DNA of 64,000 nt from Perkinsus chesapeaki ATCC PRA-425 (lineage: Eukaryota > Protista > Perkinsozoa). The stretch lies in NCBI GenBank assembly GCA_013115145.1, contig JAAPAO010000091.1, positions 19,300-83,299 on the forward strand, read 5' to 3'. Under the pieces are notes generated by a model. It did no database searches and had not been told where the DNA came from. It was given only the letters and a program-made list of their open reading frames with translations. A program made the position numbers and the translations under genes. Shown here piece after piece: positions 32,528 to 35,500 of the stretch. The first letter of the stretch is position 1. The number at the start of each line of letters is the position of its first letter.

Positions 32528-35500
32528 CTACTTGTCCTCCTCTTCTGGATCTCTCCGTCGTTTGGCATTCGCTGCATCATCGTCCTCTCCAGCATCCGGG
32601 GAGTAACCCGTCCCCGAGGGCAAGCTGTCTGGTGAATAGGCAGGCGATGTGGGGGAGTAGGCCGGTGAAGTTGGAGAATAGGATGGTGAGGTAGGAGAGT
32701 AACTGCGTAGGAGATAATATCATATCAACTGCATCCAGCTGAACTCACGATGGTGACGTATTGGAGTAGGCCGGAGAGGTTGGCGAGTAACTAACTTGAA
32801 AGTCGGAAGTGCACAAGTGCTTGAAATAGCTTACGCTGGCGAAGTCGGTGAGTATGCTGGTGAGGTTGGGCTATAGGCCGGGGACGTAGGCGAATACCTG
32901 TAAGTGGAATGCCTACAGCGGACGGCATAAGCGTGCCCTACGCTGGGCTCGTCGGGCTGTAGGCTGGGGAAGTAGGCGAATACGATGGGGATGTCGGAGA
33001 GTAGGCCGGAGATGTTGGGGAGTACGCCGGACTTGTGGGTGAGTAACTGAGGAACATGCTACCGGTAATGACATTGTTCGAGCCTACGCTGGGCTGGTCG
33101 GCGAGTATGCCGGGCTCGTCGGTGAGTAAGCCGGACTAGTCGGTGAGTAGGCGGGACTGGTCGGTGAGTAGGCCGGACTGGTCGGCGAATAGGCCGGGCT
33201 CGTGGGGGAGTAGGCTGGACTAGTTGGGGAGTATCTACCAAAGCGGGGGATGAACGAAAGGCGGTTAAGATGACTTAGGTTACGCTGGGCTAGTCGGTGA
33301 GTACGCTGGACTCGTCGGAGAGTAAGCCGGACTAGTAGGAGAGTACGCGGGGCTCGTCGGCGAGTAGGCTGGGCTCGTGGGAGAGTAACTGAGCAGAGCT
33401 CAACCCGGCGTGGGCAGCATCAGTATCTTACGCTGGGCTAGTAGGCGAGTAGCTGGGGCTCATCGCCGTGCTGCCGGGCCCAGACGAAGGGGAAGTCGGC
33501 GAATATGATGGCGACAATGCGCTCCCTGATGAGAAATGGCTCTTCACTAAATCACAGCGGAGCTCCTACTGCTGTTACCTGGTGTCATCGCCCCTGCCTC
33601 GGAGAACGGTGAGAAGGGTGTCATCCCACCACCGACTGACGCTGATGGAGTAAACTCCGACATGGCCGAGGGTGAGAAGGGTGACATCAACGCCTGAATA
33701 GAAAGGAAATGAGCAAATGGGAACAAAGAAGATGAGGACTCACAGAGCCTGGCGACTGGGCGTAACTTGTAGGGCTGAAGGCACCGCCCGGCGACAAGGC
33801 ATCGTACATGCCAGATGTCATCATAGCAGATGTTGGTGATAACATACCACCATCGTAGCTGACGAGAAGAATCATGACCATACTTCATTGGCTTCATGGA
33901 TTTACCCTCCACTCCACTCGCCAGCCATCGGGCTCGTTATGTTGCCAAATGCAACATCTGCCGCATCACGGGGAGTAGAGTCACCGACCGCCATGTCACC
34001 TACACCACAATTCTCATCGACACTCATCGACGACAACTCACCACTGTCCTTGGCAGCCTCACGCAGAGCCATATCGTCCTCAGGTAGGACCGGTCTGGCA
34101 TCCACCAGCTTGTCGGTATCGATCAACAGCTCGCATTCGGCCGTCCCTATCGGTGCCAGCTGACCAAGCATGATGTTCTCGCTGACGCCGCGCATGTAGT
34201 CTGTTTCGGCGTAGCATGCGGCGTCCATCAACATCTCAACCATCTCTTCGAAAGAGCCTAACAGATAGTGCTAAAGAACAGACTCCATCACCGCCCGGCC
34301 TACTTCTCATCAACGGTCCACGTTCAACCCTATTAATGCCGTGTCGAGTAATCGACATAAGATGACCCTTTTGACACATAGTGTCGCACAACACCGACAT
34401 ATGGCGGTAGTTAACGTATCTGAGCAAAGACAAGTCGGCGGCCAGGACCAGCGCTTACGACGGCTTACGATCCATCGAAGCTGATAACCTGTCGCAGCTC
34501 ATTCAGCAGGGCCTTCCTACACGCCTCGATGCCGAGGACGTTGAGGATCTCGACGATGTCATTTGAGAAGGTACGAGTACTGTCCACAGCCTCCATCGTC
34601 AAGACCTGATGAGCCAATGCATCCAGGTTCGATCCCGGCATCCGGCATCTACCTGCTCCAAGTTGCAACCATCAGTATCGAGGACCCATTCCCTGCTCCT
34701 CGCCTGGCAAATAGAAATACTCACTTCCTCCGAGCCATAAGAGCTTACGAATGAGCCAACATCGTTGTTATACTGAACCCTGTTATCTTGCCTCATGTAG
34801 CACTTTGTTACGCCCGGAACACCTAACGGCAACTTCACCACTGATACCGCTAGCAGCTGGAAGACTCACCCTTGAGAGTCAGGTCCGACAACAGAGAGCC
34901 TTCAACCTTTTTGAGGAGACGGAAATCCTCCTCACCATCAGCATCTACCACATCATAGACACCTTGGGTCACTCTACCACTTACCCTCATCCTCATCATC
35001 ATCCTTCATTTCCGGGCTGCCATCTTCTCCCATCTGAAAGATACAGTTTGGCAGCTTGTGGTCGATGTAAGCCTACATCACTGTCCCGCAAGAGTCTTAT
35101 TCTGACAATTAGATTTTCACTGTTATCATCAGAAACAATACACTGAACATCTCCACCGTAATCCTCGACCTGAGAGCGTTGAGAAATTGCAAGATTGTCC
35201 AAGATTAGCAAGATAACTCACTATTTTTTGCCCGACAAAGCGAGTGGACAGCTTCTTATCGATCATAACCGAGTTGTCCAGCTTGATACGAAGGACCCAC
35301 GGACTACATCGGGATGAATCGAAGTCATCTTCGGGAAGCTCGTAGTATCTAAGGTCGATCCTTACTTCTCCGGCGGCGGCGGCGGCAACAGATGAGCGCT
35401 TACTCTTCAACCAGCTGCCTATCCTCCTCTAAGATTGAGGTTCTGACATCCGGGTCAAATAGGATTTGGGTGTAGGACGTAATCTTGCCCAGTGTTGTGT

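Follow-up and report, generated by a model that had tools for sequence, protein, structure and literature searches.

Introns at one position of the heptad repeat in the C-terminal domain of RPB1 of Perkinsus chesapeaki

The stretch of DNA analysed here, called the window throughout, comprises 64,000 nucleotides of Perkinsus chesapeaki ATCC PRA-425 (assembly GCA_013115145.1, contig JAAPAO010000091.1, positions 19,300 to 83,299 of the forward strand). It carries an RPB1 gene whose C-terminal domain (CTD) is divided by six short introns, all at the same nucleotide of the heptad repeat. In tblastn searches two full-length RPB1 proteins (P0016 and P0067, with Pfam Rpb1 domains 1–7) were colinear with the minus strand from position 40981 to 34067, after which the CTD follows. 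A Pfam scan located RNA_pol_Rpb1_2 (PF00623) at 38639–38818 and RNA_pol_Rpb1_R (PF05001) in CTD exon 3 alone (E = 8e-24). On the strength of this colinearity and of the Pfam domains, the gene carrying the repeats is RPB1, long and intron-rich, with the CTD at its 3′ end. The coordinates of its features are collected in Table 1.

After removal of the six introns the CTD forms 27 consecutive heptads in one open frame. YSPTSPA is found in 22 of them, the other types being YSPTSPS (two), YSNTSPS and YSPDSLP. As modelled, the gene's 3′ end distributes the CTD and a tail over eight exons, separated by seven short introns. The 11-residue insert in the first CTD exon is kept as protein in a contig from a related species (L001, described below). 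A 33-nt in-frame GT..AG candidate at 33485–33453 was rejected as an intron and assigned to the coding sequence, as it too is kept as protein in L001, which has no GT there. The best reading of the sequence is that the fully spliced product would be a canonical CTD of about 27–28 heptads (YSPTSPA) followed by a charged tail, which requires that all seven introns be removed. The stretch was recovered from two independent DNA data sets, identical in X3 and with a single SNP in X4 (position 33277, within intron 2). Therefore, this anatomy is not an artefact of assembly.

A scripted pattern search found exactly six GT..AG segments in the array on the minus strand. All six follow nucleotide 20 of the 21-nt heptad, in phase 2 within codon 7. 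The preliminary description of the locus, which had reported six phase-2 introns of 41–49 nt at an identical nucleotide of the repeat and internal exons of 105, 147, 105, 63 and 42 nt (5, 7, 5, 3 and 2 heptads), was reproduced in these respects. With the splice site marked by a slash, the donor context is CCAGC/GT in five introns and CCATC/GT in one, and AG/N TAY stands at the other end of each. None of the six lengths is divisible by 3; removal of an intron restores both the frame and the heptad register, and its retention breaks the frame and leads to an immediate stop. As had also been claimed, any skipping of internal exons would preserve frame and register, since all of them are symmetric (phase 2-2) and consist of whole heptads in multiples of 21 nt. 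Under uniform and independent placement, the chance that six of six introns occupy one of the 21 positions is (1/21)^5 = 2.4e-7.

Table 1. Features of the RPB1 gene, in window coordinates, and intron-bearing arrays of two metagenome contigs, in contig coordinates.
Feature	Position	Strand	Basis
RPB1 gene (body exon borders partly resolved)	32442..40981	-	tblastn, Pfam, rough spliced model
First CTD exon, 94 nt: YSPTSPS, 11-residue insert, heptad 1 to nt 20	33432..33525	-	translation
CTD intron 1, 43 nt, phase 2, after heptad 1; L001 orthologue 778–821	33389..33431	-	pattern search
CTD exon, 105 nt = 5 heptads	33284..33388	-	spliced translation
CTD intron 2, 49 nt, phase 2, after heptad 6; L001 counterpart after heptad 7	33235..33283	-	pattern search
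CTD exon, 147 nt = 7 heptads	33088..33234	-	spliced translation, PF05001
CTD intron 3, 41 nt, phase 2, after heptad 13; same place in L001 (1115–1158)	33047..33087	-	pattern search
CTD exon, 105 nt = 5 heptads	32942..33046	-	spliced translation
CTD intron 4, 44 nt, phase 2, after heptad 18; absent from L001	32898..32941	-	pattern search
CTD exon, 63 nt = 3 heptads	32835..32897	-	spliced translation
CTD intron 5, 44 nt, phase 2, after heptad 21; same place in L001 (1327–1374)	32791..32834	-	pattern search
CTD exon, 42 nt = 2 heptads; same two heptads in L001	32749..32790	-	spliced translation
CTD intron 6, 46 nt, phase 2, after heptad 23, donor CCATC/GTGAGT; same place in L001 (1417–1462)	32703..32748	-	pattern search
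Exon, 171 nt: heptads 24–27 and acidic/basic tail to ...EEED-K(AA/)	32532..32702	-	spliced translation
Seventh intron, 44 nt, phase 2, AA/GTAGGC...CAG/G TAC; L001 orthologue 46 nt, 1643–1688	32488..32531	-	comparison with L001
Terminal exon, 46 nt, predicted to encode (K)YSDREDDPKKSRKE and stop TGA	32442..32487	-	comparison with L001
Intron-bearing CTD arrays of L014 and L016	L014:4004–4698; L016:4066–4759		heptad-periodicity scan

The end of the gene had to be revised. The TAG at 32530–32528, formerly taken as the stop codon, sits inside the donor AA/GTAGGC of a seventh intron that had been missed, and the true last exon lies beyond it. This terminal exon is identical to L001:1689–1734 at 38 of 46 nucleotides and all eight differences fall at third codon positions, while the intron and the downstream flank around it show only background similarity between the two sequences. 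A gene model ending at 32528 drops 14 residues. The seventh intron, too, is placed one base ahead of a Tyr codon; hence all seven window introns have the geometry NN/GT..AG/N-TAY, which is also found in all six introns of L001 (five in the array and one in the tail).

Homology searches and a Perkinsus-specific metagenome scan yielded one related contig only, L001 (a Logan contig of 2,037 nt). It was reached via P0012, a single short match with 83% identity to the last core exon, which was obtained in a profile-free search with that exon among 1.8 billion representative proteins. L001 spans the linker, the entire CTD and the gene end. Its identity to the window is near random both at fourfold sites of the non-repeat linker (21/74) and at third positions of heptads 14–23 (20/70). 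The synonymous sites are saturated, and the divergence is deep.

Comparison with related species, as proposed in the preliminary description, revealed the same design in L001 with one intron absent and one displaced. Five array introns (44, 41, 44, 48 and 46 nt) follow heptads 1, 7, 13, 21 and 23 of L001. Those after heptads 1, 13, 21 and 23 are common to both species, and with the tail intron included, five of the seven window introns are found at the same place. The second intron differs in place by exactly one heptad: it follows heptad 6 in the window and heptad 7 in L001, and both arrays have 13 heptads ahead of intron 3. L001 lacks the window intron after heptad 18, and its exon at this place contains 8 = 5+3 heptads. 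Variant heptads occupy the same ordinal places in both species (YSPTSPS at 16, YSNTSPS at 23 and YSPTSPS at 24) and Ser2 is encoded by AGC in heptads 18 and 20 of both. Because the heptad order and four intron sites were kept despite saturated synonymous sites, the design is old and stable.

The intron sequences themselves were not kept. In local alignments, orthologous introns of the window and L001 were no more alike than unrelated pairs (scores 4–7). That the window CTD introns are dissimilar to one another, as had been remarked earlier, holds in alignment as well, with scores at the level of the controls (means of 5.4 for CTD-CTD, 5.4 for CTD-body and 5.9 for body-body pairs). This dissimilarity is, however, uninformative as to their origin, because orthologous introns are equally dissimilar. 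The immediate stop upon retention, asserted for every array intron, applies to the whole window array but is not conserved: only two of the five L001 array introns produce it, whereas three begin with GTAC, read as Tyr.

For intron 2 of L001 a 62-nt version was also considered; the 41-nt version was preferred, as it has a strong GTAAGG donor and restores a one-to-one alignment of the heptads. An in-frame, in-register alternative donor (GC/GTATTC; L001:927–988) is located one heptad upstream of this strong donor, and every GCG-TAY junction in the arrays of the window and L001 is a potential cryptic donor which would remove whole heptads. Upstream of the CTD, the window is open in frame at 33940–34010, where L001:170–205 has a GT..AG intron after ...AAKDTG. 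This open stretch may represent either an intron that keeps the frame or an insert specific to the lineage.

The CTD introns were compared with 21 introns in the body of the gene which were stable between runs of a rough spliced gene model and flanked by homology-supported exons. These body introns measure 40–55 nt (median 46) and their phases are distributed 8/7/6 (n = 21). Since they share the length range and have mixed phases, the CTD introns are unusual in position only and not in size. The exon contexts differ as well. Body introns are mostly flanked by G/GT and AG/G, with G at −1 in 14/23 and at +1 in 18/23, while the CTD introns have C/GT and mostly AG/T, which is atypical for the gene. 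A better G/G site is available within the heptad (CCG/GCN) and is left unused by the CTD introns. The site they have in common is therefore not a favoured insertion context, C/GT..AG/T being a rare type for this gene, and with so poor an exon context six or seven independent gains are unlikely. In base composition, the CTD introns are C/T-rich (C 0.28, G 0.21) and the body introns G-rich (G 0.34, C 0.20).

CTD acceptors scored below body acceptors (p = 0.003) in a small position-weight model trained on 23 sites, which is a weak hint of regulated splicing. Beside an intron, the Pro6 codon takes the form CCA 10 times out of 11, as against 12 times out of 38 elsewhere (Fisher p = 6e-4). Since other synonymous sites are randomised, this bias speaks for selection by splicing; it indicates that the −3 position of the donors is under selection, and thus that the donors are probably in use. 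Two small RNA runs available under the species label (X1 and X2) contained no reads from the window stretch, and the splice junctions of the CTD introns given here are predictions from the sequence.

Eighty RPB1 3′ ends from metagenomes and the loci of several database proteins were scanned for introns whose removal restores heptad periodicity. Most of the surveyed CTD arrays have no internal intron, among them those of P0052, P0132, P0016 and P0067. The closest counterpart to the window was found in L014 and L016, contigs of two different marine metagenomes from a GC-rich eukaryote, with six phase-2 introns at one position of the RPB1 heptad array and exons of whole heptads. In contrast to the window, these introns follow nucleotide 8 (Pro3 codon) instead of 20, are 71–75 nt long and still 65–79% identical to one another, and the exons between them (42/84/42/42/42 nt) are mostly a regular 42 nt. 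Because of the mutual identity of the introns, an exon+intron unit was plainly copied in L014/L016. The lineage is unrelated, with approximately 70% identity in the most conserved RPB1 segment. The L014/L016 introns could stem from tandem copying of an exon+intron unit or else form a small family of introners.

Other arrays have fewer introns. L009 contains one CTD intron exactly between heptads (nt 0), and L010, a GOS metagenome contig, contains two (1662–1940), also exactly between heptads, in phase 0 and identical in their first 15 nt. The L010 contig ends within the second intron, and its array may be collapsed or longer. Plant-type RPB1 genes (Hibiscus L008 for P0030; the metagenome loci L015–L028 and L039) are like the window in having short phase-2 introns in the distal CTD, two of them at one heptad position. 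They are unlike it in that there are only two or three, located in a degenerate distal part and not all in one register, which split AGC Ser codons preceding Pro (Ser2, Ser5, Ser2) at the classical AG/GT, and in that the main array is a single exon. The register is thus nt 20 in the window, nt 8 in L014, nt 0 in L009 and L010, and nt 5 or 14 in plants. Within each many-intron array there is a single register, but it differs between lineages (nt 20, 8, 0), which no single universal insertion site explains.

Similar designs are familiar from other repeat proteins. For the fibrillar collagen genes, with their 54-bp exon rule, and for other repeat proteins made of symmetric exons, it is accepted that a unit of exon plus intron was amplified; the collagen exon rule is reportedly due to Yamada et al. 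in 1980 and to later work. As in collagen, the exons of the RPB1 array are whole repeat units, the introns share one repeat position and phase, and skipping would stay in frame. The differences are that a 21-nt heptad of an essential transcription enzyme is concerned here rather than a structural Gly-X-Y repeat, that the phase is 2 instead of 0, and that the introns are tiny (41–49 nt), the exon sizes irregular and the paralogy of units no longer detectable. The design is the classical collagen type, with whole-repeat exons and one intron position.

Introner and introner-like elements, known from algae and fungi, have supplied single lineages with numerous introns of similar size. The mutually similar introns of L014 could belong to such a family, whereas the window CTD introns resemble neither one another nor the 21–23 other RPB1 introns and no element signature was seen in them. 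Expansion and contraction of the CTD array by heptad units is said to be known from repeat instability in yeast and from the work of Chapman in 2008 and of Yang and Stiller in 2014, which reportedly concern intron-less arrays. The whole-heptad steps of such changes recall the one-heptad shift of intron 2; unlike those arrays, that of the window shows no homogenisation of its DNA and has kept its length and order across saturated divergence.

We consider it probable that the identical position of the introns is an inherited by-product of the evolution of the repeat array, a founder having been spread and kept in register by duplication and recombination of heptad units. According to this model, one founding intron would have lain inside a heptad, and the array would then have grown and been remodelled in whole 21-nt units, through tandem duplication, through unequal crossing-over and through gene conversion where repeats were misaligned. 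Introns could be copied, deleted or shifted by these events, and always in register. The seven introns would be ordinary short spliceosomal introns which are constitutively spliced, and the CTD introns of the Perkinsus type would descend from one founder. The changes between the window and L001 are of the kinds which the model predicts, namely a shift by one heptad with the subtotal kept and a precise presence/absence difference. Of the two origins offered in the preliminary description, tandem duplication of exon and intron is the one best supported by the comparison with L001 and L014/L016.

Several points weigh against this reading. The window-type CTD introns show no similarity to one another above that of controls, nor do the heptads flanking them; of four tests for a synonymous pattern shared by the heptads next to introns, a single one gave a nominal p = 0.04, which was disregarded. 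The case for a common origin is argued by analogy and parsimony. Saturation accounts for the absent similarity, yet it also bars testing of the common origin with these two species. The exon sizes are irregular (5/7/5/3/2 heptads), in contrast to the one repeated unit of L014. The predicted junctions derive from sequence and comparison, X1 and X2 having no reads from the gene. Finally, the difference at intron 4 may be a gain or a loss, which two species do not polarise.

Repeated independent gain of introns at one preferred heptad site, for example a proto-donor consisting of the wobble G of codon 7 followed by TAY, is unlikely, although it ranks first among the alternatives. GTA-type donors dominate the RPB1 gene and GTAC donors exist; three of the five L001 array introns begin with GTAC, the sequence expected from a G+TAC junction; one intron of the window has no counterpart in L001, and the introns have no sequence in common. 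The last point is uninformative given the equal dissimilarity of orthologous introns, and the C/GT..AG/T context is rare in the gene while the better CCG/GCN site was passed over. Moreover, in L014 the same pattern demonstrably came about by copying, and no CTD intron matches a tRNA or any Rfam family. An origin of the CTD introns as tRNA relics was rejected, no tRNA or other Rfam match having appeared even at E <= 10.

We regard as improbable that pairs of heptads (42 nt) were intronised, with a GCG-TAC junction supplying the donor and an AGY codon that once encoded Ser7 supplying the acceptor. From the codon table, this is the only pairing of donor and acceptor that removes an exact number of heptads without changing the class of the residue-7 codon, and it is in this very register that the necessary GT and AG lie. 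The in-frame donor at L001:927 demonstrates that cryptic in-register sites exist. Intron lengths of 41–49 nt do cluster around 42, but the body introns cover the same range (40–55 nt, median 46). In addition, the resemblance of the CTD introns to heptads does not exceed that of body introns or of shuffled sequence, and L001 has no extra heptads where the window has its extra intron (8 = 5+3).

To about the same degree we doubt that the introns serve regulated alternative splicing, which had been put forward in the preliminary description as a control of CTD length or an autoregulatory loop and has found no support. Perkinsus would in that case tune its heptad number by exon skipping or by in-register alternative donors at GCG-TAY junctions, or retention at weak acceptors would feed splicing capacity back onto RPB1 output. 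The symmetric whole-heptad exons, the immediate stop upon retention in the window and the lower acceptor scores (p = 0.003) would suit such a mechanism. However, the orthologous introns have no conserved sequence, unlike the flanks of regulated cassette exons, and the immediate stop is confined to two of five array introns in L001. The number and order of the heptads are fixed across saturated divergence; fixed number and variant positions point to one selected full-length product. Genes with introns of 40–50 nt are generally spliced by intron definition and exon skipping is rare in them, which also counts against a length control. The same design in the unrelated L014 lineage is a plain product of duplication, and since the introns there are visibly duplicated, the design needs no special function.

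That the array is a mis-assembled repeat or belongs to a decaying RPB1 pseudogene copy is hardly credible: repeat arrays are error-prone in assembly, but two independent DNA samples agree with an intronic SNP as their sole difference, the spliced frame is perfect, the gene body is colinear with full-length RPB1, and a second species has the same design under codon-level purifying selection.

Some other features of the window were recorded. An intron-less gene on the plus strand (26635–29712) encodes an EF3-type ABC protein of 1,025 aa with HEAT repeats, two ABC domains and a chromo insert. In the protein collections searched it had no relative of more than 49% identity and no exact record, and the proteins of this genome seem to be absent from large protein collections. 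A tRNA-Pro(UGG) gene lies on the minus strand at 43340–43411. On the plus strand, several long open reading frames at 11040–24681 contain dynein heavy chain domains (DHC_N2, AAA_7, AAA_9, D6 region), and this part of the window is accordingly assigned to a single dynein gene of very large size.

CTD introns in register were described nowhere in the papers reached by a full-text literature search, from which older papers on plant and mouse gene structure and that of Yang and Stiller (2014) were out of reach, so that a prior description is possible. A survey published in 2013 described RPB1 of Perkinsus marinus as devoid of repeat structure (PMC3646058), a statement which probably stems from a truncated gene model. 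If the donor that follows the last core exon is read through (window 33902–34270), the resulting open reading frame ends ...MAGEWSGG-stop, and an automatic model stopping there would yield RPB1 without a CTD. Read-through at this linker intron donor may explain the claim of the survey.

By contrast, the CTD encoded by the genome of the window and by its relative ranks among the most regular known, behind seven tiny introns which gene models easily miss, and this contradicts the published statement (PMC3646058). The CTDs of dinoflagellates have been reported as highly divergent (PMC4751559), and the presence of a canonical CTD in their sister lineage is relevant to when, and at which point of the Perkinsus-dinoflagellate lineage, this form was lost. 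Together with the independent case of L014, the window offers a natural example of the copying, shifting and deletion of introns in register within a coding tandem repeat, which is of use in modelling how introns are gained and lost and how the CTD evolves.

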